Counted from the first letter of the stretch, positions 11,912 to 54,949 are shown. The stretch: DNA of 64,000 nucleotides from Macrostomum lignano (GCA_002269645.1 NIVC01000413.1:310001-374000), one strand, 5' to 3'. Program-made: numbers and translations. The notes: generated by a model from the letters alone, not told the origin.

Positions 11912-11985
11912 GTGAGTTGTGACTATGATAATTTGTTTTCAATTTCCATGGCTTTACTATAAAAATAAGCATCAAAACGTTTCAG

Positions 11986-12151: not shown

Positions 12152-12250
12152 GTGAGTAATTCCGTTTCATCTCTGTATTCGTTGAGGTTTGAAAAAAGAA
12201 GTAGAGAGTAAAATTAGGCACTATCTTTTACGAGTAACAGTAGAAAGACC

Positions 12251-13835
12251 GGGGTGCTTTCACAAGGTCGAAGTTTCACAACGTCGAAAAGCAAATTATT
12301 GCACAAGGTCGAAATTTCACAAGGTCGAAATTTCACATCGAAAACTCTAGCAGAAAACTTCATAAGGTCGAAATTTCACAAGGTCGAAATTTCAGAACAT
12401 CGAAAACTCAAATAGCAGCCACTTTCACAAGGTCGAAATTTCACAAGGTCGAAATTTCAGAACATCGAAAACTCTAGCAGAAGACTGCATAAGGTCGAAA
12501 TTTCATAACATCAAAACTCAAATAGCAGCCACTTTCATAAGGTCGAAATTTCACAAGGTCGAAATTTCACAACATCGAAAACTCGAAAAGCAGCCACTTT
12601 CACAAGGTCGAAATTTCAGAACATCGAAACTCAAAAAGCAGCCACTTTCATAAGGTCGAAATTTCAAAACATCGAAAACTCGAAAAGCAGCCACTTTCAT
12701 AAGGTCGAAATTTCACAAGGTCGAAATTTCATAACATCGAAACTCAAATAGCAGCCACTTTCAGAAGGTCGAAGTTTCACAAGGTCGAAATTTCACAACA
12801 TCGAAAACTCGAAAAGCAGCCACTTTCATAAGATCGAAATTTCATAACATCGAAACTCAAATAGCAGCCACTTTCACAAGGTCGAAATTTCCCAAGGTCA
12901 AAATTTTACAACATCGAAACTCAAATAGCAGCCACTTTTACACGTCGAAATTTCCCAAGGTCGAAATTTCATAACATCGAAACTCAAATCGCAGCCACTT
13001 TTACACGTCGAAATTTCCCAAGGTCGAAATTTCATAACATCGAAACTCAAATAGCAGCCACTTTTACACGTCGAAATTTCCCAAGGTCGAAATTTCATAA
13101 CATCGAAACTCAAATAGCAGCCACTTTTACACGTCGAAATTTCCCAAGGTCGAAATTTCACAACATCGAAACTCAAATAGCAGCCACTTTCACAAGGTCG
13201 AAATTTCAAAGCATCGAAAACGCTAGCAAGGTACTTTATAAAGTTGAAATTTCACATGAAAACTCTACAGCACTCACTATACTCCATATGACAAGATCGA
13301 GTAGTGCTGTTTTCTCATAAACAGTGTCTCTACCATAGCAGGTATTTCAAATACATTACGAAATTGAAATACAACTCCAAGCTATTGATACTTTGAAGCA
13401 TGTTAGCCTCCTCTCCAATACTGGAAATGTGAATCATAAATTCTTTCAAGTCTATATATAAAATACAAATATCGATAACTTTTAAATTTGGGTTTCCGAC
13501 TTTAATTTGGATTTGACCGGCAGGGAATTTCGCTTGACTTACTGTTGACACAATATACGTTTTGTATCTGTATTCGCTTAATAAGTAAAGGAAAGTAAGG
13601 TGGTTTGTTCCATGTACTATGTAGGAGCTGCTCAGCTGTGCAGATTTTAGCTACACCGTGCGTGTGGGGTGCGTAGTGCGTACCTCACAAAGTCGCAAGT
13701 CGCTTAGGTGCGTTTGCTATCAAGTTTGGCCGTGTAGTGAAAGTTGGAGTTTGAAACCCCCGCCCTGTTATGTAAAAAACTACAAACAACTCGCCGTGTT
13801 ACAATATCCTAGCTGTAGTAAAAACATGTACATGT
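12251..13835 (+). repeat. Left TIR: outer tandem domain (AAGGTCGAAATTTCAC motifs, 63-bp units) and inner unique domain ~13210-13835
   Basis: Visible tandem repeats. The 21-aa periodic ORF 12898-13209 gives the 63-bp period. Confidence 0.9.
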
Positions 13836-14299
13836 ATATAGCATGCGTTTTCTTACATGTAATTACATGTATTTTTATGTATAGTATTTTTATAATATAA
13901 TTAATAATTTTAGGGTTCAATCAATTAAGGCTTAAGACGAAAATCAGCACAATATCCAGAAACTTTAAAAACAAGAGAATATTTTTTGGCATGTTTTATA
14001 TTTTTTATCAACCGAAGGCAACCGTTAAAGCAAAGACCTCAGTAAGACACTGTTAGGTATATAGACAAATAAGTAAGTTTTTTAGCCAAAATGATTATTA
14101 CAGCCTGTCTATCGATTCATATATACTGTATAACTGTCTAATTGTACCCATTCATCTACCAATTTATTTTTCCATCTAATATTAATATTTATTCTTTATT
14201 GTTGCTAAAGTGATAATATTAAAATCAAAGCAGATTACCTTTATCAATCTACCTATTCATCTGTCTATCTATGTATTAACCTTGACCAATCTATCAAGG

Positions 14300-14523
14300 A
14301 GTTAGGAGGCAAGGAGTATTTTGTGTGCCGCTATACTACTTGTGCTGCCAAAGCACAACTAGAAGGTGGAATTGTAATGACTAGTGGTCAGCACAACCAT
14401 GGTCCAGAGACTGATGAAAAATTAAATGTGATGTCTTTGAAGCAGAGGCTCTGCGATTCTGCCATCAGTCAACCATCAAAGCGGCTTCGCACATTGTTTC
14501 GCACGACTTCGCAAAGGCACTAA
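14300..14523 (+). pseudogene. FLYWCH-type zinc-finger fragment (Mutator-like transposase N-terminus)
   Basis: YFVCRYTTCAAKAQLEGGIVMTSGQHNHGPETDEKLNVMSLKQRL fits C-x4-C...HNH followed by LK.R. It lies just inside the left TIR. No catalytic MULE domain is seen. Confidence 0.6.
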
Positions 14524-14589
14524 CCGTGTGCGAATATTTGAGTATTAAGTCTTGTAATGTAACTCTTGTCTATTCTTAAGTCTTAACTA

Positions 14590-14730
14590 ATGTATTAACT
14601 AATTATATAATAATATTATTATTATATATATTATTATTATATATTATATAATATTATTATTATATAATAATTTAATATAATCTAATAATATTTATTATAT
14701 ATTTAATATATATTTAATATATATTTAACA
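14590..14730. repeat. AT-only low-complexity tract
   Basis: (TA/TTA)n composition. Confidence 0.9.
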
Positions 14731-15019
14731 AGCTGTTGAAACCCGCGGATTTTGAACCCGGGGAATTTCAATCCCCGGAACTACTTTTGCATGTATTCTG
14801 AAATCTAAGGTCATACACAAACAAAAACTTGTTAATAGTTAGTAGGATAGAGGTAGACATAAAATGGAGTACATTCGTGTAAAATTAGGATTTGAGGCAA
14901 ACATTGATATTGTTGGCTGGGGTACTGCACAGAATGTCAGGCAATGTCTGTCTGACTCTAAAACATGTATTGGCAAACTCTGGCCTCTCCCTGACTCTCC
15001 CTATGTCCCTTGGATCCTT

Positions 15020-16550
15020 TAAAATTTCTATCGTCTCTTCTGTTTCCTCTCTTCTCTCTCGTCCCTCGTCTCTCCTCTCTCTTCTCTCCTCTCTCCTCTC
15101 TTCTCTCATATCTTCCCTCATCTCTCTTTTCTTTCATCTCTCTTATCTCTTGTCTCTTCTCTCTTCTCTCCTCTCTCCTGTCTCCTCTACTTTTCGTTTT
15201 CTCTCTCCTCTCCTCTCTCCTCTCTACTCTTTCGTTTTCTCTTTCCTCTCCTCTCTCCTATCTTCTTTCGTATCTTCCCTCATCTCTCTTCTCTTTCATA
15301 TCTCTTATCTCATCTCTTCCCTATTCTTTTCTCTCTCCCCTCCTCTCTCCTTTCTACTTTTCGTTTTCTCCCTCCTCTCCCCCTCTTCTCTCGTCTCTTC
15401 CTTGTCCTCTCTATTCTTTTCTCTCTTCTCTTAACTCTCTCCTCTACTCTCTCAGCTCTCCTCTCTACTCTTTCCTCTCTCTCTCTCTCCTCTCTCCCCT
15501 CTTCTCCTCTTCTCTCGTCTCTTCCCTCACCTCTTTCCTCTCTCTCTTTCCTCTCATCTCTTTTCTTGTTTTATCTCTTCTCTCTCCCCTCGTCGCTCGT
15601 CTCTTCCCTCTCCTCTCTTCTCTCTCGTCTGCTCTTTCATCTCTCCTTTCTCTTCTTTTATCTTTTCTCTCTTATATCTTCTCGTTTCTCTCTGCTCTGC
15701 GCTCTCTCTCTCTCTCTCTCTCTCCTCTCTCCTCTCCCATCTCTCTTCTCCTCTCTACTCTTTCCACTCTTCATTCTCCTATTTCCTCTTCTCTCTCCCT
15801 GTCTCTCCTCTCTCCTCTAGTTTCTGTAATCTCTTCTCTCTTATCTCTCCTCTGTTCTCTCTACTCTCCCATCTCTCGTCTGTTCACCCTCATCTCTGCT
15901 CTCTCATCTGTCATCTTTACTCTCTAATACGTTCTCTCACTTATCTCCTCTGTACTCTTCTCTTTCACCTCTTCTGACTCCTCTCTTTCCTTACTCCTCT
16001 CTTCTTTTCTCTTCCCTCTTCTATACTCTCTCTCCTCTAATATCTTCTCTCGTCTCTCTGCACTCTCCTCTCACCTTTTTCATCTCTCATCTTTACTCTT
16101 TCATCTCTCCTTTCATTTGTCTCATCTCTACAATCTCATCTCTCCTTTCTCCCCTCTTCTTACACCCCTCTCTTATCTCTATCTCTTCTCTTCTCACTCC
16201 TCTCTCCCCCTCTTATCTCCTCTCTTCTCCATCCTTTCTACTCTCTCCTCTCCTCTTGACCCTCTGTCATCTTCTTTCTGCTCTCTCATCTCTACTCTCT
16301 TCTCACTCTTCTTTACTCTCCTCTCATCGATCCTCTGTCTCATCTCTCCCCTCTTCTCACCTTTACTCTTCCTCTCTACACCTCCTCTCCCTCCTTTCTC
16401 CCCTCCTCTCGCTTCTTCCTCCCTTCTTCTCTGCCCTCTCCTCACCACTTGTCTCTCCTCTTATCTTCCATGTTTTCTCTTATCCCCTCTCGCCTCTCCT
16501 CTCTTCTAATAGTCTATTCCTTCTCCTTTCCTCTCTCATCTGGCCCGCAC
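15020..16550. repeat. CT-rich cryptic microsatellite (polypyrimidine on + strand)
   Basis: Composition is almost entirely C/T. The long Leu/Ser ORFs here are compositional artefacts. Confidence 0.95.
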
Positions 16551-17299
16551 ATAAGCTGGATTCTTTATCTGGCTTTTGAAGTAAAAGTCTGCCGATCCCT
16601 GCTTCGAAAGCCAGTTTGTGGGACGTACTACTCTCATCGTTATTCTCATGCTTTGATCACGTCATCTTTCTTGCCAATTTGCAGCCCTGAAAGGAATTTG
16701 TGTATCTTCAGCTCCACTGCAGTCTGCATCAGTCTAACAACCAAGGAAATACGCATTTCTTAGGAGGCCATTTAAAATTTACACAGTACCTTTAAAAGAA
16801 ACCTAAAATTTCCATGGTGTGCCTAATTTAGCAGGGTTGTATTGCATTGCATCGCATCGCCTTTTCATAAATATTTCGCTTTTACAAACCATGCTGGATT
16901 GCCTCGATTTGCCAATTGCCATCCACTGTTAAACTGCTGCAGAGTTTGCCAATACAGAGGGGAGGGCAGTGGTTAGAATTTCTCACTAAACTGTTATGGC
17001 TAAACGTAGCCTCTCCACTCTCGGGGTGCAGAGAAGGCTATTAAAAAGTTATTCCAAAACACTGTACACTCGCTATGTACATTGAGCCCTATTGCCTGAC
17101 CCTTCGTATGGCTCTGGGGGAATGAGTGAGTGAGTGGCACAAACAACAGAAAAAGCAGACAAACTTCACATGCTTACAGTTTCTGCTCTGATTTAGTTAG
17201 AGAGTTGAAACTTTACATTTAGACAGAGAATGAATCAAAGAAGAATTGTGTTAAGTTAGAAGTCAATCGCTTCACGTGGAGCAAACTTATGGCAGCCGA

Positions 17300-20200
17300 A
17301 AGTTAGTCATTTTAAAGCCCATTTACACCCTTTGCCCAGATCGGGAAAGAGGCAGGCGGGCGGAGGTTGGGGTGGCTGTCTCGCTGAAAAAAACAGCCTA
17401 ACTTTAAAAGTGCACAGCGCCGTTCAGGATTAACATTGAGACTCGAAATTTTACACGATTGTGTCAAAATAGTTGAAAATTGATTGTGTCAAATTTGAAG
17501 AGGATCGGTAGAAGTGGAGCGGCGCTAAGGAGGCTTTAGTAAAAAAAATCGCGCATTTTGAGCAGTTTTTTGCACTTTTAGGTAGGAAGACTTGAGTCTA
17601 GGAAATTAAAAGGTAGCCTAAGACATTCTCCGTAGTAAGTTTAGGGTGAGTGTAAAGTTTGGTGTAATTTGGTTAAGCGGTTTGGGAGTCCATAGCGATC
17701 AAAATTGACCACACACAGACAGACACACAGACACACACACACAGAGTTTTGATTTTTATAGGTAGAGACGAGTGGAACTCCTCCTTCGGAGGAGAAAGGG
17801 GAAGAACTCCCATCACCGGAATTCCATTCCCTGAAATATCCATCAACTGAAATTCCATGTCTTGAACCCTATCTTCCAAATCGTCTCCAAATTCTTTACA
17901 AAATCTTTGAAAGACCATAGCTCAAAGACTCTCACGTCTCTCATATCTCCTCTCTCTTCTATTCGCTATTATCGTGACTCTCTTCTTTCTCCTCTCTCTC
18001 ATCTCATCTCTACCCCTACTCCCTTATTTATCTCTTCTCCCTCGTCTTTCGTTTGTACCCTCTCCTGTCTCTTGTCTCCTCTCTTCTCTCATATCTCTCC
18101 TCTTCACTTCTGTCTCCTGTCTCCTCTCTTCTCTCTTATCTCTCCTCTTCTCTCCTCTCTCATATGTCATCTCTCCTTACTTATCTATCGTCTCTCTTAA
18201 CCCTCTCTCTCTTCTCTTTTCTCTCCTATCTGCTTCTCATTTCTCATATCTCATATACGCTCTCACACTCTACTTTCTTGTCTCCATCTTTCTTTCCTCC
18301 TTACCACTATCCCCTGTCTCTTCTCTTCTCTCTTTTCTATCCTCTCCATTCTCTCTTCTCTCCTCTCCTTTCTCATTTCATCTTCTTCCCTCTCTTCTCT
18401 AATCTCTAATCTCTTCTCTCTTATGTTCTCACTCATCTCTTTTCTCATCGCATCTCTCATCTCTCCTCTCCTCACTACTTTCCTTCTGTTAACTCTCTTA
18501 TCTCTGATCTTTCATCTCTTTCCTCTCTCCTCTCTCTCTTCTCCTCTCGCTTCTCTCTCTCCTCTCTCTCCTCTCATCTATACTACCTTATTTATATCTT
18601 CTCCCTGGTCTTTCGTCTCTACTCTCTCCTGTCTCATTTCTCCCTCTCTTTCTCCTCTCTTCTCTCTCCCCTCCTCTCTCATCTCTCATCCCTCATCTCA
18701 CTCCTTCTTTCTTCTCTACTCTCCCCTCTTTTCTATTACCTCTGTACGCTCTTATCCCTCATCTCTATTCTCTCTCCTATCATCTCTCTTGTCTCCCTCT
18801 GCTATCTCATATCTCCCCTCTCGTCTCCTCTCTCCTCTTCTCTTCTCTCTCCTTCGTTCCCGCCTTACTCCCCTCTTCTCTCCCATCTGTCATGTCTAAT
18901 CTCTCGTCTCATTTCTACTCTGTTTTCTATCATCTCATCTCATCTCTCTTCTCTTTTCATTCTTCTCTTTACTCTCTTCTCTGACTGATTGAAGATGCCA
19001 AATCCATCAAGATCCTCTCCGCGAAGCAGAAAAATCCTGTCCGTGCGACTGAAAACCATCGAAATCCTCTCCGTGAAACTGGACTCCTTCGAAATCCTCT
19101 CCAGAAATCCTCTCATTTCTACTCTGTTTTCTTTCATCTCATCTCTCTTCTCTTTTCATTCTTCTCTTTACTCTCTTCTCTGACTGATTGAAGATGCCAA
19201 ATCGATCAAGATCCTCTCCGCGAAGCAGAAATCCTGTCCGTGCAACTGAAAACCATCGAAATCCTCTCCGTGAAACTGGACTCCTTCGAAATCCTCTCCT
19301 TGAAACATAAATTCATCAAAATCGTCTCCATAAAATAGAAATCAATCATAAATTATCTCCGCGAAACAGAAATCCTCTCCGTGAAGCTGAACATCGTCGA
19401 AATCCTCTCCGTGAAACTGAACACCATCGAAATCCTCTCCACGAAACAGAAATTCTCTCCGTCAAAATTAAAACATTGAAATCGTCTCCGCTAAACTGGA
19501 CTCAATCGAATTTTTTCCGTCAAACAACTCAACTCTCCGGATTCATTGGTTAGGGTTAGGGTTAGGGTTAGGGTTAGAACTGCGCACAGGTTCGTGTTAA
19601 AAGGCACTGATAAAAATATTGAACTAATTGAATCAATTCATTGCGCAACTGATTTCACAGTCAGTCAGTCAATCTAAATCAACCCTCCAATACACAGCAG
19701 CAGTGAGAAGTTGAACCCTCCCCCCAACTTTATCTATTACGTCTCGCAAAACTGATTACAATTTTTGCAAAAAGTTAAAAGTATGGGAATAATTTTTGCC
19801 AATGAAAAGCTTTTAGTTTTCATATATAAAGCAAACAACTTATATCCTCGAACTCTGCGTTGCAAGATCTTTCCAGCAATATAAGTTTCTCCTCTCAAAG
19901 TTTAAAACTCGAGGAACAGTTAGCGTTTGAAATTTACCGATTTCCCGACTGCTTGCTAGAGAAGCTCGCAATTCATTGAATTTCACTGCCAAGCTAATAC
20001 ACAGGGATGCCTATGGAGAAAAAAAGGCGCCAATAATAAAACCAATTGAATCCCGACACAGTCCTGATTCCTATCTATCTGTTTACACTGTACAACTGCT
20101 ATGTACACTCAGCCCAAGCCCAACCCCCCGTTCTGGGGGAAGCATTAAATTTAACTGAACCCCCCAACACGCGGGGGGGGGTTTATTTTCACTCGCACCC

Positions 20201-23200
20201 ACCACCCCTCAATACACAGCGGCCCGCGGGCGGAGGTTGGGGTGGCTATTTTTACAAACTGGCTGCAGCCCCAGGCAGAGTGGCAAAAGAAGGTTATTGG
20301 GGGTCAAAAAGGCAGTTTCCTGCTTTTTTGAGGATCTTAGAAATTAAAATTTCAGAATTAAAATAGCCTATAGCCGACCTCGGATAATTTCCAATCTTCC
20401 CATATAAGTTTCAACGCTGAGTTGCCACTATTCAAGGAGGAGTTGTCGAAATGACAGACAGACAGACAAACAACGCGTCAACTTTAGTATATGTACGAGT
20501 GGAACTCCTCCTTCGGAGGAGAAAGGGGAAGAACTCCCATCACCGGAATTCCATTCCCTGAATTATCCATCAACTGAAATTCCATGTCTTGAACCCCATC
20601 TTCCAAATCGTCTCCAAATTCTTTACAAACCTTTCAAAGACCATAGCTCAAAGACTCTTACGTCTCTCATATCTACTCTCTCCTCTCTTCGCTAATATCG
20701 TGACTCTCTTCTTTCTCCTCTCTCTCATCTCATCTCTACCCCTACTCTCTTATTTATCTCTACTCCCTTATTTATCTCTTCTCCCTCGTCTTTCGTCTGT
20801 ACCCTCTCCTGTCTACTCTCCTATCTTCTATCTTATCTCTCCCCTTTTCTCTCCTCTCTCATATCTCATCTCTACTTACTTATCTATTGTCTCCGCTCTA
20901 CTTTCTCTCTTCTCTCTGCTCTCATTTCTCGTATCTCTTATACGCTCTCACCCTCTCCTTTCTTATCTACCATCTTTCTTCCCTTTCTACTGCATCACCT
21001 GTCTCCTCTCCTCTCTTTTCTCTCCTCTCATCTCCCCTCATCTCTTCTCTAATCTCGAATCTCTCCTCTCTCATATCTCTTCTCTACTCACTTATCTATT
21101 CTCTCTCCTCTGCTCCCCTTTTACACTTTCGTATATGCTCTCACTCTCACCCTCCCCTTTCTTATCTCCTGTTTTTTACACTCCTTTCTACCACCTGTCT
21201 CCTCTCGTTTCTCTCCTCTCTGCACTCTCATCTTTACCCTCTTCTTTCTCCTCACTACTTTCTTCTCTTAAATCTCTGATCTCTGATCTTTCATCTCTCT
21301 CCTCTCACCTCTCACCTCTCTCCTCTCTTTCCTCTCTCCTATTGCCTCTGTACGCTCTTATCCCTGCTTTCTTTTCTCTCCTGTCTCCTCTCTGCTATCT
21401 CATGTCTCCTCTCTCATATCCTCTTCCTTCATCTCCTCTCTCCTCTTCTCTTCTCTCTCCTTCGTTCCCGCCTTACTCCCCTCTTCTCTCCCATCTGTCA
21501 TGTCTAATCTCTCCACTCATTTCTACTCTGTTTTCTACCATCTCATATCTCTCTCTTTTCATTCTTCTCTTTACTCTCTTCTCTGACTGATTTAAGATGC
21601 CAAATCCATCAAGATCCTCTCCGCGAAGCAGAAAAATCCTGTCCGTGCAACTGAAAACCATCGAAATCCTCTCCGTGAAACTGGACTCCTTCGAAATCCT
21701 CTCATTGAAACTTAAATCCATCAAAATCGTTTCCATAAAACATAAATCAATCATAAATTTAACTCCGCGAAACAGAAATCCTCTCCGTGAAGCTGAACAT
21801 CATCAAAATCCTCTCCGTGAAACTGAGCACCATCGAAATCCTCTCCACGAAACAGAAATCCTCTCCGTCAAAATTAAAACATTGAAATCGTCTCCGCTAA
21901 ACTGGACTCAATCAATTTTTTCCGTCAACAACTCAACTCTCCGGATTCATTGGTTAGGGTTAGGGTTAGGGTTAGAACTACGCACAGCTTCGTGTTAAAA
22001 GGCACTGATAAACTATTGAACTAATTGAATCAATTCATTGCGCAACCGATTTCACAGTCAGTCAGTATCAGTCTCAGTTAAAGTTATTAAAAACATTGCG
22101 CAATCTAATCAACCCTCCAATACAAAGCAACTGACCCCCTTCCTATACACAGCGCCAGTTAGAAGTCGAAACCCCCAACTTTATCTCTCACCTCTCGCCA
22201 AAATGAGTACAATCTTTGCAGAAAGTTTAAAGTATGGAAATAGTTTTTGCAATGCAGAGCTTTTAGTTTTCATATTTGAAGCAAACAATTTATATCCCTG
22301 AAATCAGCTTTGCAAGTTCTTTCCAGCAATATAAATTTTTTCTCTCAAAGTTAAAAACTCGAGCAACAGTTTGCGTTTGAAACTTTCTGATTTAAAGCAT
22401 TGAAATATCGATTGTACGTTCACTGCCTGCTAAAGAGGCCCGCAAGTTTATGCATTGAATTTCAAGGTTCAACAAAATCACAGGGCTGCCTATTGAAAAT
22501 TAGAACACAAATCTTTGCGCAATTGTCTACACAGTCAGCCAGTGAGCCAGGGTCCGATTGTACACAGGCAGCCATTTAGAACGCCCCATCCCCCCACTGG
22601 AGAGAAAATACACTGCAGAGATAGGGAAAAGTTGTGGCGCAATCACTTGAAATTCATGCAAATTTTCAGCTCCAAGCAGAAAGAGGGGACAATTAAGATT
22701 ATCAAAGGTCAAGACCGCCGTTTTCTGCTTTTTTGAGGATCTTAGAAATTAAAATTTCAGAATTAAAATAGCCTATAGCCGACCTCGGATAATTTCCAAT
22801 CTTCCCATATAAGTTTCAACGCTGAGTTGCCACTATTCAAGGAGGAGTTGTCGAAATGACACACATACAGACAGACAAACAACACGTCAACTTTAGTATA
22901 TGTAGACGAGTGGAACTCCTCCTTCGGAGGAGAAAGGGGAAGAACTCCCATCACCGGAATTCTATTCCCTGAAACATCCATCAACTGAAATTCCATGTCT
23001 TTAACCCTATCTTCTAAATCGTCTCCAAATTCTTTACAAAATCTTTCAAAGACCATAGCTCAAAGACTCTCAAGTCTCTCATATCTCCTCTCTCCTCTCT
23101 CTCATCTCATCTCTACCCCTGCTCCCTTATTTATCTCTTCTCCCTCGTCTTTCGTCTGTACCTTCTCCTGTCTTCTGTCTCCTCTCTTCACTCTTATCTC

Positions 23201-36184: not shown

Positions 36185-37159
36185 CCCCTGTCACGATCCC
36201 TCACCATTTGAATATCTCCAAGGAAGAAAGTCTCATTCGCTAAGTAATTTCGTGTAAATGATTAAGGCAAGTCGGAGACGAAAGTTATTAATTGAAATTT
36301 ATTAGAAAAGGCCTCAACACGTGTAAGTTTGAAGATTTCCTGCCCTTCTGTGCCTCATTTCACGAAGCCACATGTGTTCAGTTATGACTTAAAAAGGCGT
36401 TTTGACATTGTGTAGAAGCAGGTATTAAAGTTTAGCAATTGATTTGAGATTTAGTAATATATAGTGATGATATAAGCTGTAACAATCATACATTGAAGGA
36501 AATTTGTGAAGAGGCCTTTTTCATATAATTACTATTTGTATTTACATTGAAAAATTTAGAATTGTACATTATTTTACTTTAGTGACGCAGAAAAGTTAAA
36601 AAGCATAATAAAAATAGCAGTAGAAGTATCGAGCTGGGATTTTTATATAGGAAGTGAAAAATATGAAAGTGCTTAATTGTAGCAACTAAATTTTAATAAC
36701 AATTTTCCATCGCTTAGTTCTACTGATAGAAAATTTTGGCAAATAGCTATTTACAACCTGGGGAATGTATTTGTACGCATGATAATGGAGGGCATCCTGA
36801 AAAAAATAATTTGTAGAGAAAGGATAAAGTGAATTTGATAAATTCCTCGACAATTCTATGTGGCTGATAGAATCCCCATATGGAACAGTTAATTGACAGT
36901 CTTGAATAGCTAGCAGCGAATTTTTCTAGCTTAGCGGGAATTTTCACAAAGGAGCCAAAATTGCCGAGTTGCTATGAATTTCGACACGGCGTATGTAATT
37001 TTTGATGCCCTGAATTATCAAAGGGAATATTTGAATGGGTGAAATACAAATGTATGAGAAATATACAATAAATGAAAGATGGCATACAAAATTCATGAGG
37101 CACCCGATCAGGGCAAGCACGATAAAACACTTGATCAGATTGAAGCAATTGCACGGAGC

Positions 37160-43100: not shown

Positions 43101-44470
43101 CAGTCGCTTCAGGAAATCGGGCGGATCACGGCGCGGCTCCAAGTGGGTCTGCCGGTTGGGTTTAGAAAACTCCTCATCTTAAACAGGTTATTAAAATTAC
43201 GGCATGGCAATCAGTAAAAAAACTAAAAAATTTAGCATTTGCATGCTCTTGCTAGGGTACTCATTAAGTTTCTAAAGCTTCATGCCATTGATAAAGTATT
43301 CAATAAAATGATCAATAAAACTAATTAATAAAAACTGGACTCACCTTGCCAGAGTGGCAGCAGATGCTGGCTGGCTCGTCATTCCAGCGTAGCGCGCCGC
43401 AGTGGGGACATTGACGGTCCATGCGGCCGAGGACATGTGGCTGGTGTGCCAATTCCAGCAGTCTGAGAAGCAAAAAACGGGAAATGTAATTATGAGGATC
43501 ATTTAAGTAAAGATGCTGAATGTGGATATAAAGTCCTATTACGCTAGGAGCCTTCTACGTAAAGGTTGTAATGTATGGGCTACAAAAATATACATTATAA
43601 AGGTTATAATCTATCTTCTTATATACTAATTTTCACGTGTTGTTTGTCCGATAAGAAGTAATAGTAAACTAATTTTAATATTAATAATAAACTAATTTTA
43701 ATATTAATAATAAGAACTAATAATACTTATCATAGAATATTATACACAGTAAAAGCATTGATGTACATTGTAAAATAAAAATGAGTGAAACGCCTACCTG
43801 TCTCGGCGCCGGTCTGCTTGCGCATGCAGACGCAGGTCGTGCTCATCAGCGGCCTCAGCCGTGCGACGCTGACTCTGTCGCTGCCGCTGCACGTCAAGGC
43901 GATGCATGTGGACCGTCTCCGATTCACTCGCGCGGCATTCCGCTGTGTGCTGCTGGTCTAGCTCGCGGCGATGCTTGCGCTCGGCTTCGCCCTCAGCTGC
44001 GCGGTCTTCAGCTGTTCGCAGCCGGTCCTGCTCGAGGCGATGCTGGCGCTCGGCCTCGTCCTCAGCTGCGCGGTCTTCAGCTGTGCGCAGCCGGTTCTGC
44101 TCGAGGCGATGCTGGCGCTCGGCCTCGTCCTCAGCTGCGCGGTCTTCAGCTGTGCGCAGCGGGTTCTGCTTGAGGCGATGCTGGCGCTCGGCCTCGCCCT
44201 CAACTGCGCGTCTTTCCGCCTGGCAAAGCCTATTCTGCTCCAGGCGTGCTGCATGCTCCTCTGGTGTCTCGGAGTCCCTCCGCTTCTTGGCACCAGATGC
44301 AGCGCGTGTAGAGCGGGACAAATTGCCTCGACCGCGTTTAGGCATTACAAAAAAAGGAATTTATTTGAAGAAAATATTTTAAAAAATATTGAGAGGCGAT
44401 TGAAACAATCCGGCCAAGTGTGGATCGGTGGTATCGAAACAAAACGTGACTTTATATAAAGCAATTAGCT
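37160..44470 (-). mobile_element. Helitron (autonomous type, intron-containing RepHel); exact ends not located
   Basis: Contains a complete set of Rep and Pif1-helicase motifs (see the RepHel feature). Confidence 0.9.
38125..44345 (-). pseudogene. Helitron RepHel (HUH endonuclease plus Pif1-family helicase), about 9 exons, at least 3 single-base frameshifts
   Basis: N-terminal 23-aa repeats; CPHC...CCHSGK zinc finger (43345-43464); Helitron-N region YDPLEYVLLFP; EYQKRG/LPHVHALLW HUH motif; YVVKYITKG; APGGTGKT Walker A; WDEAPM Walker B; GDFRQLL; AMTIHKSQGQSL; HGQLYVALSR. Frameshifts near 42760, 41005 and 39468. Confidence 0.92.
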
Positions 44471-44751
44471 GTCCCGTGCCTGCAGCTTTGCGTCACTAAA
44501 TCTCCACTTCTCTACACCAAGTGTACAAACATCGCTTTGATGAGTAAAACTGCTGCCTAACCAACCAATCAGCGGACAGTTCTCTGTGGACTAAATTTTA
44601 TCTTATCTTCAATGTACATACAGACAATCGATTTAATTTATTAATTTAGAATTCACCAATTACTATGCACGAAAAGGAGTGAATTCTTCATTGGGCCGGG
44701 GGTTGGGGTTAGGGTAACCATCATTTCATCGTTCTTTCATTTCATTGCTAT

Positions 44752-47700
44752 CTGTAGCCTACTGGGCATTCACTGTGTACACTGAACCCTATCACTTCAC
44801 CGCGGCCCGCCACCCCTGGCCCCAACACGGGTTATTTGAATTGAATAGTGTCAGAAAATTTAAAGAAAGATTTTTCTTGAATGCTGTGCTTTTTGTTTTC
44901 ATGATTAAAGCAAGAAACTTATACCCCCGAACTCAGCGTTGCAAGCTCTTTCCAGCAATATAAGTCTCTTCTCTTAAAGTTTAAAACTCGTGGAACAGTT
45001 GCCGTTTCTAATTTCCCAATTTCCCGACTGCTTGCCTGAGAGGCTCGCAATTTTGTACATTGAATTTCACTGCCAAGCTAATACACAGGGCCGATAATAA
45101 AAAAGTGAACCAATTGAATCAATTGATTGCGCAATATATTTCTGTGTTAGTCAGTATAAGTCTCAGTTAAAGTTAACAAAAAGTTTGCGCAATCTAATCA
45201 ACCCTCCAATACAAAGCAACTGACCCCCTTCCTATACACAGCGCCAGTTAGAAGTCGAAACCCCCAACTTTATCTCTCACCTCTCGCCAAAATGAGTACA
45301 ATCTTTGCAGAAAGTTTAAAGTATGGAAATAGTTTTTGCAATGCAGAGCTTTTAGTTTTCATATTTGAAGCAAACAATTTATATCCCTGAAATCAGCTTT
45401 GCAAGTTCTTTCCAGCAATATAAATTTTTTCTCTCAAAGTTAAAAACTCGAGCAACAGTTTGCGTTTGAAACTTTCTGATTTAAAGCATTGAAATATCGA
45501 TTGTACGTTCACTGCCTGCTAAAGAGGCCCGCAAGTTTATGCATTGAATTTCAAGGTTCAACAAAATCACAGGGCTGCCTATTGAAAATTAGAACACAAA
45601 TCTTTGCGCAATTGTCTACACAGTCAGCCAGTGAGCCAGGGTCCGATTGTACACAGGCAGCCATTTAGAACGCCCCATCCCCCACTGGAGAGAAAATACA
45701 CTGCAGAGATAGGGAAAAGTTGTGGCGCAATCACTTGAAATTCATGCAAATTTTCAGCTCCAAGCAGAAAGAGGGGACAATTAAGATTATCAAAGGTCAA
45801 GACCGCCGTTTTCTGCTTTTTTGAGGATCTTAGAAATTAAAATTTCAGAATTAAAATAGCCTATAGCCGACCTCGGATAATTTCCAATCTTCCCATATAA
45901 GTTTCAACGCTGAGTTGCCACTATTCAAGGAGGAGTTGTCGAAATGACACACACACAGACAGACAAGGCCGATAATAAAAAAGTGAACCAATTGAATCAA
46001 TTGATTGCGCAATATATTTCTGTGTTAGTCAGTATAAGTCTCAGTTAAAGTTAACAAAAAGTTTGCGCAATCTAATCAACCCTCCAATACAAAGCAACTG
46101 ACCCCCTTCCTATACACAGCGCCAGTTAGAAGTCGAAACCCCCAACTTTATCTCTCACCTCTCGCCAAAATGAGTACAATCTTTGCAGAAAGTTTAAAGT
46201 ATGGAAATAGTTTTTGCAATGCAGAGCTTTTAGTTTTCATATTTGAAGCAAACAATTTATATCCCTGAAATCAGCTTTGCAAGTTCTTTCCAGCAATATA
46301 AATTTTTTCTCTCAAAGTTAAAAACTCGAGCAACAGTTTGCGTTTGAAACTTTCTGATTTAAAGCATTGAAATATCGATTGTACGTTCACTGCCTGCTAA
46401 AGAGGCCCGCAAGTTTATGCATTGAATTTCAAGGTTCAACAAAATCACAGGGCTGCCTATTGAAAATTAGAACACAAATCTTTGCGCAATTGTCTACACA
46501 GTCAGCCAGTGAGCCAGGGTCCGATTGTACACAGGCAGCCATTTAGAACGCCCCATCCCCCCACTGGAGAGAAAATACACTGCAGAGATAGGGAAAAGTT
46601 GTGGCGCAATCACTTGAAATTCATGCAAATTTTCAGCTCCAAGCAGAAAGAGGGGACAATTAAGATTATCAAAGGTCAAGACCGCCGTTTTCTGCTTTTT
46701 TGAGGATCTTAGAAATTAAAATTTCAGAATTAAAATAGCCTATAGCCGACCTCGGATAATTTCCAATCTTCCCATATAAGTTTCAACGCTGAGTTGGCAC
46801 TATTCAAGGAGGAGTTGTCGAAATGACACACACACAGACAGACAAACAACACGTCAACTTTAGTATAGACGAGTGGAACTCCTCCTTCGGAGGAGAAAGG
46901 GGAAGAACTCCCATCACCGGAATTCTATTCCCTGAAATATCCATCAACTGAAATTCCATGTCTTTAACCCTATCTTCCAAATCGTCTCCAAATTCTTTAC
47001 AAAATCTTTCAAAGACCATAGCTCAAAGACTCTTACGTCTCTCATATCTACTCTCTCCTCTCTTCGCTATTATCGTGACTCGCTTCTCTCTCCTCTCTCT
47101 CATCTCATCTCTACCCCTACTCTCTTATTTATCTCTACTCCCTTATTTATCTCTTCTCCCTCGTCTTTCGTCTGTACCCTATCCTGTCTACTCTCCTATC
47201 TTCTATCTTATCTCTCCCCTTTTCTCTCCTCTCTCATATCTAATCTCTAATCACTTATCTATCGTCTCCGCTCTACTTTCTCTCTTCTTTTTTCTCTCTT
47301 CTCTCTGCTCTCATTTCTCGTATCTCTTATACGCTCTCACCCTCTCCTTTCTTATCTCCCATCTTTCTTCCCTCCTTTCTACTGCATCACCTGTCTCCTC
47401 TCTTCTCTTTTCTCTCCTCTCCATTCTCTCTTCTCTACTCTCATCTCCCCTCATCTCTTCTCTAATCTCTAATCTCTTCTCTCTCTTATTTTCTCACTCA
47501 TCTCTTTTCTCATTGCATCTCTCATCTCTCCTCTCTCTCTCTCCTCTCATCTGTACTATCTTTTTTATCTCTTCTCCCAGGTCTTTCAAATTTACTCTCT
47601 CCTGTCTCCTCTCTCCCCTCGTCTTTCCTCTCTCATATCTCTTCTCTACTCACTTATATATTCTCTCTCCTCTGCTCCCCTTTTACACTTTCCTATATGC

Positions 47701-50700
47701 TCTCACTCTCACCCTCCCCTTTCTTATCTGCTGTTTTTACACTCCTTTCTACCACCTGTCTCCTCTCGTTTCTCTCCTCTCTGCACTCTCATCTTTACCC
47801 TCTTCTTTCTCCTCACTACTTTCTTCTCTTAAATCTCTGATCTCTGATCTTTCATCTCTCTCCTCTCACCTCTCACCTCTCTCCTCTCTTTCCTCTCTTC
47901 TATTGCCTCTGTACGCTCTTGTCCCTCCTTTCTTCTCCATCCTGTCTCCTCTCTGCAATCTCATATCTCCTCTCTCATATCCTCTCCCTTCATCTCCTCT
48001 CTCCTCTTCTCTTCTCTCTCCTTCGTTCCCGCCTTACTTTCCTCTTCTCTCCCATCTGTCATGTCTAATCTCTCCACTCATTTCTACTCTGTTTTCTATC
48101 ATCTCATCTCTCTTCTCTTTTCATTCTTCTCTTTACTCTCTTCTCTGACTGATTGAAGATGCCAAATCCATCAAGATCCTCTCCGCGAAGCAGAAATCCT
48201 GTCCGTGCAACTGAAAACCATCGAAATCCTCTCCGTGAAACTGGACTCCTTCGAAATCCTCTCCTTGAAACTTAAATCCATCAAAATCGTCTCCATAAAA
48301 CAGAAATCAATCATAAATTATCTCCGCGAAACAGAAATCCTCTCCGTGAAGCTGAACATCATCGAAATCCTCTCCGTGAAACTGAACACCTTCGAAATCC
48401 TCTCCGTGAAACTGAACACCTTCGAAATCCTCTCCTTGAAACTTAAATCTATCAAAATCGTCTCCATAAAACATAAATCAATCATAAATTTAACTCCGCG
48501 AAACAGAAATCCTCTCCGTGAAGCTGAACATCATCAAAATCCTCTCCGTGAAACTGAGCACCATCGAAATCCTCTCCACGAAACAGAAATCCTCTTTGTC
48601 AAAATTAAAACATTGAAATCGTCTCCGCTAAACTGGACTCAATCAATTTTTTCCGTCAAACAACTCAACTCTCCGGATTCATTGGTTAGGGTTAGGGTTA
48701 GGGTTAGAACTACGCACAGCTTCGTGTTAAAAGGCACTGATAAACTATTGAACTAATTGAATCAATTCATTGCGCAACCGATTTCACAGTCAGTCAGTAT
48801 CAGTCTCAGTTAAAGTTAACAAAAACATTGCGCAATCTAAATCAACCCTCCAATACAAAGCAACTGACCCCCTTCCTATGCACAGCGCCAGTTGGAAGTC
48901 GAAACCCCCAACTTTATCTCTCACCTCTCGCCAAAATGAGTACAATCTTTGCAGAAAGTTTAAAGTATGGAAATAGTTTTTGCAATGCAGAGCTTTTAGT
49001 TTTCATATTTGAAGCAAACAATTTATATCCCTGAAATCAGCTTTGCAAGTTCTTTCCAGCAATATAAATTTTTTCTCTCAAAGTTAAAAACTCGAGCAAC
49101 AGTTTGCGTTTGAAACTTTCTGATTTAAAGCATTGAAATATCGATTGTACGTTCACTGCCTGCTAAAGAGGCCCGCAAGTTTATGCATTGAATTTCAACG
49201 TTCAACAAAATCACAGGGCTGCCTATTGAAAATTAGAACACAAATCTTTGCGCAATTGTCTATACAGTCAGCCAGTGAGCCAGGGTCCGATTGTACACAG
49301 GCAGCCATTTAGAACGCCCCATCCCCCACTGGAGAGAAAATACACTGCAGAGATAGGGAAAAGTTGTGGCGCAATCACTTGAAATTCATGCAAATTTTCA
49401 GCTCCAAGCAGAAAGAGGGGACAATTAAGATTATCAAAGGTCAAGACCGCCGTTTTCTGCTTTTTTGAGGATTTTAGAAATTAAAATTTCAGAATTAAAA
49501 TAGCCTATAGCCGACCTCGGATAATTTCCAATCTTCCCATATAAGTTTCAACGCTGAGTTGCCACTATTCAAGGAGGAGTTGTCGAAATGACAGACAGAC
49601 ACACAGACAGACAGACAAACAACGCGTCAACTTTAGTATATATAGATAGACGAGTGGAACTCCTCCTTCGGAGGAGAAAGGGGAAGAACTCCCATCACCG
49701 GAATTCCATTTCCTGAAATATTCATCAACTGAAATTCCATCTCTTGAACCCTATCTTCCAAATCGTCTCCAAATTCTTTACAAAACCTTTCAAAGACCAT
49801 TGCTCAAAGACTCTCACGTCTCTTATATCTCCTCTCTCCTCTCTTCGCTATTATCGTGACTCTCTTCTCTCTCCTCTCTCATCTCATATCTACCCCTACT
49901 CCCTTATTTATCTCTTCTCCCTCGTCTTTCGTCTGTACCCCCTCCTGTCTCCTCTGTTCTCTGTTCTATCACATCTCTATTCTTCACTTCTGTCTCCTGT
50001 CTCCTCTCTTCTCTCTTATCTCTCCTTCTTCTCTTCTCTCTCATATGTCATCTCTACTCACTTATCTATCGTCTCTCTTAACCCTCTCTCTCTCTCTCTC
50101 TCTCTTCTCTCCTCTCTGCTCTCATTTCTTATATCTCATATACGGTCTCAGACTCTACTTTCTTGTCTCCCATCTTTCTTTCCTCCTTTCCACTACCCCC
50201 CGTCTCTTCTCTTCTCTCTTTTCTAATCTCTAATCTCTCTTCTCTTATGTTCTCACTCATCTCTTCTCCTCGCATCTCTCTTCTCTCCTCTCCTCACTAC
50301 TTCCCTCTCTTAACTCTCTCATCTCTGATTTTTCACCTCTCTCCTCTCTCCTCTCGCTCTTTTCCTTTCGCTTCTCACTCCTCCCTCTCCTCTCATCTCT
50401 ACTACTTTATTTATATCTTCTCCCTCGTCTTTCGTCTCTACTCTCGTCTGTCTCCTTTCTCCCCTTTTTTCTCCTCTTTTCTCTCTTCTCTCTCCGCTCC
50501 TCTCTCATCTCTCATCCCTCATCTCACTCTTTCTTTCTCCTCTACTCTCCCCTCTCTTCTATTTCCTCTGTACGCTCTTATCCTTCATCTATTCTCTCTC
50601 CTATTATCTCTCTTGTCTCCCTTTGCTATCTCATATATCCCCTCTCATCTCCTTTCTCCTCTTCGCTTTTCTGTCCTTCGTTCCCGCCTTAATCCCCTCT

Positions 50701-52060
50701 TCTCTCCCATCTGTCATGTCTAATCTCTCCACTCATTTCTACTCTGTTTTCTACCATCTCATATCTCTTCTTTTTTCATTCTTCTTTTTATTCTCTTCTC
50801 TGACTGATTGAAGATGCCAAATCAATCAAGATCCTCTCCGCGAAGCAGAAATCCTGTCCGTGCAACTGAAAACCATCGAAATCCTCTCCGTGAAACTGAA
50901 GAGAATCGAAATCCTCTCCGCGAAACAGAAATCCTCTCCGTGAAACTGAAAACCATCGAAATTCTTTCTTTTAAACTGGACTCAATCGAAATTTCCTCCG
51001 TCAAAAAGAATAAATATCAGGATTCATTGGTTATTGTTAAGGGTTAGGGTTAGGGTTAGAGCTACACACAGCTGCGTGTTCAAATAAAAAATGAACCAAT
51101 TGAATCAATTGATTGCGCAACCGATTTCACAGTCAGTCAGTATCAGTCTCAGTTAAAGTTAGCAAAAAAATTGCGCAATCTAAATCAACCCTCCAGTACA
51201 CAGAGACCGACCCCTTTTCAATACGCAGTGGCAGTTAGAAATTGAACCTCAAACTTTTGGGGGCATTGAACAAAAAAATGAGTACAATCTTTGCATAAAG
51301 CTAAAAGTATGGAAATAGTTTTTTGAAACAATTTATATCCTCGAACTCAGCGTTGCAAGATCTTTTCAGCAGTATAAGTCTCTTCTCTTAAAGTTTAGAA
51401 CTCGAAGAGCAGTTAGCGTTTGAAAGTTCCCGTTTTAAAGCATTGAAATATCGCGTGTACGTTCACTACTGCCTGCTGGCACAAATAATAAAACAAATTG
51501 ATGGCGCAATTCATTTCTCCGTCAGTCAGTATCAGTCTCGGTTAAAATTATTACGCAAACTAAATCAACCCTCCAATGCTCAGAGACTGACCCCTTGCAA
51601 TACGCAGTGGCGGTTAGAAATTGAACCCACCCCCCCCCCCCCCCAACTGTTGGGGGGTCGGTCGAACCCCCATTCAATCCTAAATGAGTACACTCTTTGC
51701 AGAAAGTTAAAAGAATGGAAATAGTTTTTCCAATGCAGAGCATTTAGTTTTCATATTTAATGCAAACAATTTATATAATTGAAATCAGCATTGAAAGATC
51801 TTTCCAGCAATATAAGTCTCTTCTCTCTAAGTTAAAAACTCTGGGAACAGTTTGCGTTTGAAATTTCCTAATTTAAAGCATTGAATTTTTGAGTGTACGT
51901 TCACTGCCTGCTACATAGGGAGGCTCGCAAATTTATTCATTGAATTTTACTGAAGCCCTAACACCCCCAATACGTACGGGGGTTTTATTTGCCCCAGTGC
52001 TCAATGCAAAAAATTGTGGCGCAATCGCTAAAAATTGATGTCAACCGGCCCGGTTACACC
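44752..52060 (-). mobile_element. Second array of the same Helitron-like/telomeric-repeat units
   Basis: Same modules, junctions at 46870 and 49651, TTAGGG arrays at 48686 and ~51040. 46958-48770 is closely similar to 20589-22040. Confidence 0.75.
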
Positions 52061-52068
52061 CGGTTACA

Positions 52069-53609
52069 CATGTACATGTTTTTACTACAGCTAGGATATT
52101 GTAACACGGCGAGTTGTTTGTAGTTTTTTACATAACAGGGCGGGGGTTTCAAACTCCAACTTTCACTACACGGCCAAACTTGATAGCAAACGCACCTAAG
52201 CGACTTGCGACTTTGTGAGGTACGCACTACGCACCCCACACGCACGGTGTAGCTAAAATCTGCACAGCTGAGCAGCTCCTACATAGTACATGGAACAAAC
52301 CACCTTACTTTCCTTTACTTATTAAGCGAATACAGATACAAAACGTATATTGTGTCAACAGTAAGTCAAGCGAAATTCCCTGCCGGTCAAATCCAAATTA
52401 AAGTCGGAAACCCAAATTTAAAAGTTATCGATATTTGTATTTTATATATAGACTTGAAAGAATTTATGATTCACATTTCCAGTATTGGAGAGGAGGCTAA
52501 CACGCTTCAAAGTATCAATAGCTTGGAGTTGTATTTCAATTTCGTAATGTATTTGAAATACCTGCTATGGTAGAGACACTGTTTATGAGAAAACAGCACT
52601 ACTCGATCTTGTCATATGGAGTATAGTGAGTGCTGTAGAGTTTTCATGTGAAATTTCAACTTTATAAAGTACCTTGCTAGCGTTTTCGATGCTTTGAAAT
52701 TTCGACCTTGTGAAAGTGGCTGCTATTTGAGTTTCGATGTTGTGAAATTTCGACCTTGGGAAATTTCGACGTGTAAAAGTGGCTGCTATTTGAGTTTCGA
52801 TGTTATGAAATTTCGACCTTGGGAAATTTCGACGTGTAAAAGTGGCTGCTATTTGAGTTTCGATGTTATGAAATTTCGACCTTGGGAAATTTCGACGTGT
52901 AAAAGTGGCTGCGATTTGAGTTTCGATGTTATGAAATTTCGACCTTGGGAAATTTCGACGTGTAAAAGTGGCTGCGATTTGAGTTTCGATGTTGTGAAAT
53001 TTCGACCTTGGGAAATTTCGACGTGTAAAAGTGGCTGCTATTTGAGTTTCGATGTTGTAAAATTTTGACCTTGGGAAATTTCGACCTTGTGAAAGTGGCT
53101 GCTATTTGAGTTTCGATGTTATGAAATTTCGACCTTATGAAAGTGGCTGCTTTTCGAGTTTTCGATGTTGTGAAATTTCGACCTTGTGAAACTTCGACCT
53201 TCTGAAAGTGGCTGCTATTTGAGTTTTCGATGTTGTGAAATTTCGACCTTGTGAAACTTCGACCTTCTGAAAGTGGCTGCTATTTGAGTTTTCGATGTTG
53301 TGAAATTTCGACCTTGTGAAAGTGGCTGCTTTTTGAGTTTCGATGTTATGAAATTTCGACGTGTGAAAGTGGCTGCTATTTGAGTTTCGATGTTATGAAA
53401 TTTCGACGTGTGAAAGTGGCTGCTATTTGAGTTTCGATGTTATGAAATTTCGACCTTGTGAAAGTGGCTGCTATTTGAGTTTCGATGTTATGAAATTTCG
53501 ACCTTATGAAAGTGGCTGCGCTTTTCGAGTTTTCGATGTTATGAAATTTCGACCTTGAAATTTCGCTTTTCGAGTTTTCGATGTTGTGAAATTTCGACCT
53601 TTGTGAAAT
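52069..53609 (-). repeat. Right TIR of the giant element
   Basis: Reverse complement of 12251-13835, with one extra 63-bp unit (124-aa versus 103-aa periodic ORF). Confidence 0.9.
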
Positions 53610-53754
53610 GAAAGACCATGATTTCGAATACACACATTTTTTTGTCTGGATCTCCAAAAATATTCAACCAATTGCCATGAAAATCCAGAACACGGGCTAA
53701 AAGTTTTCGCTCTATTTGATGACAACTTCGAGAATCACGAAAAATCGGTATCGT

Positions 53755-54750
53755 CGAGATATTCAACGATTCTCCTCGGGGTGTCTAGTGGAAAAAACCA
53801 CCAACATTGGCAAAATTTTTCTGCTCACAAAATCTCATCATGAAACCACGTCGGCTCGACAAACTATGCATATCAGTCGTAGAGGCCTTTGTTCTCAGCA
53901 TCACAGGCACCAGGGTTCCCTTCGTCACCATCTGGACATCGGCGGCGACCGTCGGGACCTTCAATAAAAGCACCCGATTGGCATCTTAGAGATGGTTGCG
54001 TTCCCAAAACTGAAATGGAAGAATCCTCTTCTGCATGCAGCATTCAGTCAGTAGACACAATCGGTGAATGAAATGGACGATGGTGACCCTCTAGACTGAT
54101 CTGTAGACATACAGGCGACCAGAGTTTTGTCGACACAGAGGTACGGCCCGGAAAGAACAGGATGGCGCAGCTGACTGACAAAGGTGTCCCACAAGCGTCG
54201 GATGTCGTAGAGCTTGTCCGTTGCGGCAGTCCGCTGATGATGTTCGGCAGTTTCGAATTTAACATGGTGCAAAAGCATTGCATAATACGCAGACATGCCT
54301 GGTTTGGTGCCTTGATAGAAAAAGCATGATGTTGGTGGTGTCAGCTCGTCGGGGCCGCGTGGTGGCTCTCCGTTGAAGGTCCCAAAGGTCGCCTGTATGT
54401 CTACAGATCAGTCTAGAGGGTCACCATCGTCCATTTCATTCACCGATTGTGTCTACTGACTGAAGGCTGCATGCAGAAGAGGATTCTTCCATTTCAGTTT
54501 TGGGAACGCAACCATCTCTGAGATGCCAATCGGGTGCTTTTCTTGAAGGTCCCGACGGTCGCCGCCGATGCCCCAGATGGTGATGAAGGGAACTCTGGTG
54601 CCTGTGATGCTGAGAACAAAGGCCTCTACGACAGATGGACCCAGATTATTGAGCCAATATGGATTCACCATTCACCATTAAGGTTTATACAGTGTAGTGT
54701 TGGTTGTCCTAGCCACCAGTGTCTTCGACAAGAATCGTTGAATATCTTGA
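53755..54750. repeat. Long inverted repeat: arms ~53872-54120 and 54387-54636 highly similar, with a degenerate outward extension
   Basis: CTAGACTGATCTGTAGACATACAGGCGACC versus GGTCGCCTGTATGTCTACAGATCAGTCTAG; AGATATTCAACGATTCT (53757) versus AGAATCGTTGAATATCT (~54731). Confidence 0.85.
54113..54310 (-). pseudogene. piggyBac transposase fragment (DDE_Tnp_1_7-like)
   Basis: MLLHHVKFE...TDKLYDIRRLWDTFVSQL...GPYLCVDKTLVA matches the piggyBac DKL..IR..WD.F....L...Y..G.YLTVDEQLV block. Confidence 0.75.
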
Positions 54751-54949
54751 ACATCTGACGTCGGATGACTTTGAAAGTTAGTTCGTCGGAAAGGGCGGAA
54801 AATTTTGATTCATATGGTGGACTTTTAAGAAAATCGGTAATTCGGTTTGCGAGCTATCGTGAAATGGGTCGTGTGTATTTGTACTATACGACGTGGTCTT
54901 TCTCCATGGGGAAAATTAGTGTGGTCTTTCTACTGCTAAATAATTACAG

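Follow-up and report, generated by a model that had tools for sequence, protein, structure and literature searches.

Nested transposon insertions are known from maize, and the FB elements of Drosophila are able to enclose unrelated DNA. The Y-linked Drosophila genes kl-3 and kl-5 show intron gigantism through repeat accumulation (PMC6508621). Among elements with composite terminal inverted repeats (TIRs), Tm1 of Meloidogyne carries TIRs with internal repeats, asymmetric 7-nucleotide (nt) terminal motifs and target duplications of 8-10 nt, usually 9 (PMC3169594). Helitrons have been associated with telomeric sequence in several systems: those of Paramecium, in which telomeric-repeat-targeting Helitrons have been characterised so far, insert into C-strand telomeric (C4A2) repeats (PMC13085455), Hydractinia possesses Helitron-derived subtelomeric arrays (PMC11934779), and telomeric Helitrons are attributed to Drosophila biarmipes (PMC6581046, as cited in PMC11934779). 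Here we analyze a 64,000-nt stretch of the flatworm Macrostomum lignano (NIVC01000413.1, positions 310001-374000; hereafter the window, with coordinates counted from its first letter), in which intron 4 in the second copy of a tandemly duplicated gene extends over 42.8 kb. The host is a lineage-specific CUB/lectin-like membrane-protein gene, and we consider it highly probable that its phase-2 intron of ~96 nt was inflated by successive nested cut-and-paste insertions. The parts of this intron, and the uninterrupted intron with which it was compared, are the following.

12152-54949, plus strand: intron 4 of copy 2, 42,798 nt, GT..AG
12152-12236, plus strand: left 85 nt of the ancestral intron, aligning to the copy 1 intron and ending in the target TA (12235-12236)
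12237-12250: left terminus (TIR) of the outer transposon, of which 12243-12250 doubles as the left copy of the inner 8-nt duplication
12251-13838: left inverted arm of the inner element, with terminal GGGGTGC, ~950 nt of 16-nt subrepeats (TTTCACAAGGTCGAAA) and then 631 nt of unique sequence
14302-14523, plus strand: FLYWCH-like zinc-finger remnant in the loop of the inner element (Pfam PF04500, E = 0.04, 14.5 bits, below threshold)
15000-33915, minus strand: Helitron-derived tandem array, first part, with units of 1.2-2.7 kb and (CCCTAA)2-5 at its junctions
35270-44702, minus strand: long Helitron copy of ~9.4 kb with a RepHel gene, 3' limit approximate
44703-52064, minus strand: Helitron-derived array, second part
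52065-53609: right inverted arm of the inner element
53610-53617: right copy of the 8-nt target duplication (GAAAGACC)
53618-54936: body and right terminus of the outer transposon, with an internal palindrome and a weak piggyBac-like remnant
54937-54949, plus strand: right copy of the TA (54937-54938) and last 11 nt of the ancestral intron with the acceptor AG
1256-1344, plus strand: comparator, the uninterrupted intron 4 of copy 1, 89 nt

The intron begins with the donor GTGAGT at 12152 and ends with ..TTACAG at 54949, and these GT..AG borders lie at the position and phase conserved in the gene family. Exon 4 ends in ..GAG AAA TTT GT and exon 5 starts with A GAT CCA, so that the frame is maintained (..SEKFV/DPGAATGP..), and an identical exon 4-exon 5 junction is found in the M. 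lignano paralogous proteins P0001, the closest paralogue, and P0007. The intron equivalent to that of copy 2 is 89 nt long in copy 1 and 86 nt long in the P0007 gene (7710-7795 of L002, which is contig NIVC01000413.1 of the M. lignano assembly Mlig_3_7). Deletion of 12251-53617, followed by deletion of 12237-12250 together with 53618-54938, leaves 96 nt, and the three paralogues then have introns of 86, 89 and 96 nt at identical position and phase. The rebuilt intron matches the copy 1 intron in 69 of 100 alignment columns, with a score of 67 compared to -8 ± 8 in shuffles; none of 2000 shuffles reached the observed score, either with the whole intron or with the identical first 18 nt left out. 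The 3' ends agree as well (TAAATAACTGCAG in the rebuilt intron and TAAATAATTACAG in copy 1). Every base can be assigned to a component: the ancestral intron accounts for 96 nt, the outer transposon for 1,333 nt and its target duplication for 2 nt, the inner element for 41,359 nt and its target duplication for 8 nt (96 + 2 + 1,333 + 41,367 = 42,798 nt, or 446 × 96). An earlier note on this DNA had proposed that nested insertions enlarged a short intron ~450-fold with its splice sites intact, that stepwise excision returns a 96-nt intron resembling that of copy 1, and that exons 4 and 5 were originally contiguous. The borders, TIRs, duplications, rebuilt empty site and shared P0001/P0007 junction bear this out, and exact accounting sets the enlargement at 446-fold. 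The two nested elements it had listed stand, but its list of layers was too short, as the inner block additionally holds a Helitron-derived array that includes one RepHel-coding copy.

The outer element (12237-12250 plus 53618-54936, 1,333 nt) is split by the inner one. The window contains its terminal 13-mer, CAGTAGAAAGACC, at two places only, 12238-12250 and, inverted, 54923-54935 (0.09 occurrences expected). Removal of the inner block lengthens this match by one base on each side and restores the TIR CAGTAGAAAGACCA on both ends; the TIR is exact over 13 nt, or matches in 14 of 15 positions when a mismatched first base is counted. Both ends are flanked by TA (12235-12236 and 54937-54938), which can with equal parsimony be read as a TA duplication followed by a mismatched first TIR base or as part of a 4-nt GTAA/CTAA duplication, and both readings give the identical 96-nt empty site. 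A landing site at a TA 13 nt from the acceptor, as first described, fits the right TA, which lies 11 nt from exon 5, or 13 nt when the TA is counted; the 4-nt reading of the flanks is just as parsimonious. Within the body lie a 280-nt internal palindrome (53841-54120 / 54387-54667) and a 60-residue, weakly piggyBac-like stretch (54051-54296, minus strand; DDE_Tnp_1_7, 18 bits, E = 0.002, below the Pfam cut-off of 22.4 bits) that has no match among PDB sequences and 1.84 billion representative proteins. A TA duplication with short TIRs is what Tc1/mariner elements display; no Tc1/mariner DDE/D transposase or clear relative of one was found in any of the six frames of the element. The TTAA duplication of piggyBac is not present, the flanks being GTAA and CTAA, and the TIR core TAGAAAGA presumably resembles a piggyBac terminus, a resemblance that we take as a lead only. 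The TIR is absent from the four other loci compared. Taken together, these features suggest a non-autonomous short-TIR DNA transposon, possibly of one of these two superfamilies.

The inner element is bracketed by the 8-nt direct repeat GAAAGACC at 12243-12250 and 53610-53617 (8 of 8 positions match, and 8 of 9 if the repeat is lengthened to 9 nt). Its inverted arms measure 1,588 nt on the left and 1,545 nt on the right, and their unique 631-nt part is identical at 629 positions. The 16-nt subrepeats of the arms are organized in higher-order periods of 47-113 nt, with 22 and 15 copies of a 20-mer core, and the GGGGTGC of the left terminus has no complement at the right terminus. Neither a MULE domain nor a long open reading frame (ORF) was found in the loop; the lack of a MULE transposase is expected of a non-autonomous copy. 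Long composite TIRs built from tandem subrepeats and a target duplication within the 8-10 nt range, by which Foldback/Phantom elements are recognized, are both present. From its architecture, the inner element looks like a non-autonomous foldback-like transposon, a candidate rather than a proven member of Foldback/Phantom within the Mutator superfamily. The foldback subrepeat is absent from the four loci compared. Elsewhere in the window, the intron following a duplicated exon 2 contains a 381-nt foldback-like miniature inverted-repeat transposable element (MITE; 7447-7827), which has a 16-nt subrepeat (TTTCGGGTTTGTGATA) related to that of the inner element, GGGG termini and a 7-nt duplication (CCTAGAG).

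The interior of the inner element is a direct head-to-tail array of 0.9-2.8 kb units with one copy of ~9.4 kb. On the minus strand, a unit opens with the 5' end CCAATGAAT.., continues through 30-mer repeats, a GA-rich block and a complex part, and closes with the 3' end ..AGCTGTGTGTAG, and the plus strand of the array is strongly C/T-rich. Read along the RepHel strand, each unit terminates in ..AACACGCAGCTGTGTGTAG and is followed by (CCCTAA)2-5 and the CCAATGAAT.. of the next unit. There are 12 such telomeric-block junctions in the window, and one of them lies immediately 5' of the RepHel copy, which makes that copy the long (~9.4 kb) member of the array series. The RepHel gene (38125-44345, minus strand) is split by several short introns, retains all domains (Pfam Helitron_like_N, E = 7e-53; PIF1, E = 1e-21 and 1e-27; Pif1_2B, E = 6e-17) and encodes a protein 91% identical in amino acids to M. 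lignano P0016. A GC-AG intron at ~41669-41757 restores ..EYQKRG-LPHVHALLWL.. and with it the HxH motif GLPHVHAL, and the frame near 39,470-39,520 requires a frameshift or an alternative acceptor. The protein that defines Helitrons, an HUH Rep joined to a Pif1-type helicase, is therefore encoded here.

The same array, with the same junctions and unit ends and a RepHel gene directly downstream, is found on an independent contig (L003, 1-8053), which indicates that the units are Helitron-derived and bounded by telomeric repeats. The array may represent a telomeric-repeat-targeting Helitron family in a flatworm. A pattern scan of the P0017 locus (L004) did not find the exact 30-mer. An array of RNA genes was also considered and rejected, as the window contains no Rfam families or tRNAs. 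Three further features adjoin these sequences. The RepHel copy lies between two copies, 93% identical, of a 266-nt direct repeat (35366-35629 and 44751-45007); this repeat is equivalent to the 3'-proximal portion of long-type units and thereby places a truncated long unit directly upstream of the complete RepHel copy. A unique 1.3-kb segment (34100-35365, minus strand) with a small coiled-coil-like ORF (MAHHTTQSGSNLEKFDKQKK..) separates the long Helitron copy from the next array unit. On L003, the RepHel gene is cut short at 11454-12134, beside a gene with a weak DNA_pol_B_2 match, and this segment may be a Maverick/Polinton-like insertion.

In the order of events that we propose, the 1.33-kb non-autonomous short-TIR transposon would have inserted 11 nt upstream of the acceptor, and the foldback-type (Mutator/Phantom-like) element would then have inserted 14 nt inside the left end of this transposon. 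The ~37 kb Helitron-derived array in the foldback interior would have been either carried as cargo or built in place. With 0.3% divergence between the arms and two perfect duplications, the inner insertion looks recent; alternatively, the arms are being homogenised. Several observations weigh against this scheme of nested insertions. The target duplication of the outer element is short, at 2 nt, or at 4 nt if one mismatch is allowed, and no transposase for either TIR element was found, Pfam matches being sub-threshold and 1.84 billion representative proteins yielding none. GAAAGACC is also present twice near the right end of the outer element, so that the 8-nt duplication could in theory be a repeat that already existed inside that element; we regard this account as less parsimonious, as no spacer remnants lie beside the insert. 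Within the array, the canonical 5'-TC and CTRR-3' Helitron ends were not found, the unit ends lying between CCCTAA repeats, and the 3' near-palindrome of the units folds no better than shuffles (z = 0.3-0.5), which leaves a canonical Helitron 3' hairpin unsupported; the units are possibly a non-canonical Helitron variant. Finally, introns of M. lignano average 1.1-1.4 kb (PMC5730564), which implies that long introns are tolerated to some degree in this species.

The alternative that survives best concerns how the block reached its size. A small foldback element may have inserted alone, with the ~37-kb array growing later through serial Helitron insertion into telomeric tracts of the loop and unequal crossing-over, such that no 41-kb unit ever transposed. 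We regard this as a serious contender, to which we assign slightly less than an even chance. The numbers of CCCTAA repeats at unit bounds are variable, as expected for insertion into telomeric tracts, for which Paramecium provides a precedent (PMC13085455). Neighbouring units are very unequal in length (0.88, 1.24, 2.0-2.8 and 9.4 kb), some adjacent units are 99.7-100% identical, which points to local amplification, and on L003 the same array occurs with no foldback arms in view. The array units differ among themselves by 0-20%, and many lie 12-20% apart compared to 0.3% for the arms, a disparity that fits pre-diversified cargo unless the donors were diverged or the arms homogenised; moreover, no telomeric tract is visible at the boundaries between array and loop. 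The array may be either pre-diversified cargo or an in-place accumulation from diverged donors accompanied by some local amplification.

A second question is whether nested insertion has left the gene functional. Judging from the sequence, canonical splicing of exon 4 to exon 5 is rather probably lost or rare, because 42.7 kb now separate the original branch region from the acceptor and many decoys lie on the sense strand of the insert. Only AATAATTACAG (11 nt) of the ancestral intron is left before the acceptor, which means that any branch site must lie in transposon sequence, and no good branch consensus was seen in the transposon right end. The decoys comprise 29 AATAAA and 43 ATTAAA motifs, 23 strong acceptor-like sites and 12 GTRAGT motifs; the same strand also carries kilobases of CU-rich tracts. 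Read-through beyond the donor reaches a TGA at 12153-12155 (..EKFV-TGA), and its product would be a truncated protein without a membrane anchor. That the gene still functions, with the 42.8-kb intron removed, possibly stepwise, by means of branch and pyrimidine sequence in the transposon right end as the earlier note suggested, appears doubtful to us. Such splicing would be consistent with the intact donor and acceptor dinucleotides and exon frames, the open state of exons 2-5, the pyrimidine-rich transposon end GGTCTTTCTACTGC and the occurrence of some long introns in the species (PMC5730564). It must nevertheless contend with the 11-nt remnant and the abundant decoys described above, and the native acceptors of the gene family are not pyrimidine-rich and do not depend on a pyrimidine tract. 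In addition, adjacent copies are decayed, and the public collection searched yielded no protein with 90% or more identity to copy 2.

The boldest form of the nested-insertion scheme would combine the cargo option with continued splicing: a foldback-type transposon would have moved a concatemer of telomeric-repeat-targeting Helitrons, including a largely complete RepHel copy, as one unit into the gene, and the resulting 42.8-kb, CU-rich intron would possibly still be processed. We consider this combination improbable. If true, foldback elements would be vehicles by which Helitron arrays, together with interstitial telomeric repeats, spread through an animal genome.

We find it very unlikely that the block, or its size, is an artefact of mis-joined or mis-estimated repeats in the PacBio/Canu assembly. 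This assembly is difficult, with >50% repetitive sequence and redundant duplicated blocks (PMC5730564), and tandem arrays of near-identical units are prone to collapse and expansion. Both nested junction pairs, however, show TIRs and target duplications, and stepwise removal restores first the outer TIR (CAGTAGAAAGACCA at both ends) and then a paralogue-like intron, which a chimeric join would not do; a mis-join is unlikely, whereas the length of the array alone could be mis-assembled. Least credible of all, to the point of near-exclusion, is the reading in which the two exons come from different truncated copies, exon 4 from one that lacks its 3' part and exon 5 from one that lacks its 5' part, with intergenic repeats between them. 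Partial duplications are indeed common here (the exon 2 duplicate, the in-frame stop of copy 1, the exon 5-ankyrin fusion), yet precise excision yields a GT..AG intron of 96 nt that has conserved ends and agrees with the family in size, position and phase.

Members of the host gene family lie in tandem on NIVC01000413.1, with the P0007 gene upstream of the window, and positions 1-3017 of the window are 100% identical to 11830-14846 of L002. Among matches in the protein collection searched, family members are confined to M. lignano, and their proteins have a signal peptide, CUB-like and lectin-like domains and a transmembrane segment. Within the window, the family is represented by the following.

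772-1014, 1086-1255 and from 1345: exons of copy 1, the last being exon 5
6974-7330: extra exon 2
10624-10986, 11671-11913, 11982-12151 and from 54950: exons of copy 2, the last being exon 5
11982-12151, plus strand: exon 4 of copy 2, located by tblastn with P0001 and P0007 and identical to copy 1 exon 4 at 169 of 170 positions
54950-56219, plus strand: exon 5 ORF of copy 2, with the lectin-like end, the transmembrane segment, PDAP repeats and an in-frame ankyrin fragment
from 62985: further family copy

Exons 2-5 of copy 2 are all open. Exon 3 of copy 1 is interrupted by an in-frame TGA (835-837) that corresponds to a CGA in copy 2, and copy 1 is probably a pseudogene because of this stop and because it is absent from the called genes of L002 despite lying inside L002. 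Exon 2 is duplicated together with short flanks (6974-7400 and 10621-11050; ~95% identity inside the exon), the homology beginning immediately upstream of the acceptor. From exon 5 of copy 2, the reading frame runs on (55837-56231) through a 12-nt tandem repeat encoding PDAP-type peptide repeats into an ankyrin segment, which is homologous to the Ank/Mab-21 protein P0004 from residue ~84 onwards, and the join looks like a chimeric junction with a 5'-truncated ankyrin/Mab-21 paralogue. With the copy 1 stop, the duplicated exon 2, the ankyrin fusion and the absence of a closely matching protein, the neighbourhood of copy 2 looks decayed. Relative to the paralogous Ank/Mab-21 gene in L001, ~3.26 kb are extra at 57176-60433, including an integrase ORF (58486-59523) with zinc-binding and rve domains; this is a retrotransposon fragment interrupting the Ank/Mab-21 paralogue, at which no long terminal repeats were found. 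The sequence upstream in L001 is not syntenic with the window and provides no empty site. Downstream of copy 1, an 18-nt tandem repeat (CTGTCTTAGAGTAGGGTA) is present in 41 copies at 2778-3520.

Intron inflation is a well-documented and ordinary type of event, unsurprising where over half the genome consists of repeats, and the two TIR elements belong to families that are undescribed in M. lignano but of known kinds. The value of this locus lies in its clarity, as the whole 446-fold enlargement can be resolved base by base into layers, and exact termini and target duplications are supplied for two undescribed M. lignano DNA-transposon families. It also offers a natural test of how much inflation a short-intron gene tolerates. 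Of the by-products, the Helitron array bounded by telomeric repeats is the most interesting and the one most worth following up. A Helitron family of a regeneration model here forms arrays with telomeric repeats between their units, which links this family both to the recently described telomere-associated Helitrons and to interstitial telomeric sequences.

Compared to described systems, the outer element resembles non-autonomous elements of Tc1/mariner or piggyBac type in its short TIRs and its TA or xTAA (piggyBac-like) flanks, but one extra, mismatched base separates the TA from CAGT, and the flanks are not TTAA. With Foldback/Phantom elements (Drosophila FB; Tm1, PMC3169594), the inner element shares long TIRs built from subrepeats, unequal arms, a duplication in the 8-10 nt range, asymmetric short termini, the enclosure of unrelated DNA and the existence of non-autonomous and MITE-like copies, which are numerous in that group and are represented here by the 381-nt relative. 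It differs from them in lacking a MULE transposase, in its sub-threshold FLYWCH remnant, in a subrepeat unrelated to those of described families and in its size of 41 kb, far above that of Tm1 copies. The array differs from telomere-associated Helitrons in being interstitial, within a gene intron and another transposon of a TTAGGG flatworm host, in that neither canonical TC/CTRR ends nor the 3' hairpin was found, and in that insertion into telomeric repeats is here putative. It resembles them in the variable C-strand telomeric repeats on both sides of its units, their fixed orientation relative to the RepHel gene, the abundant internal satellites between ORF and ends, and the head-to-tail arrangement. 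As for the intron as a whole, its 43 kb compare to megabases in kl-3 and kl-5, and its host is a young and possibly decaying tandem duplicate whose continued expression, like any dedicated expression programme, is putative; it nonetheless shares with those genes and with the nested insertions of maize an enlargement by orders of magnitude through satellites and transposons, in which insertions lie within insertions while exons and splice sites are kept.

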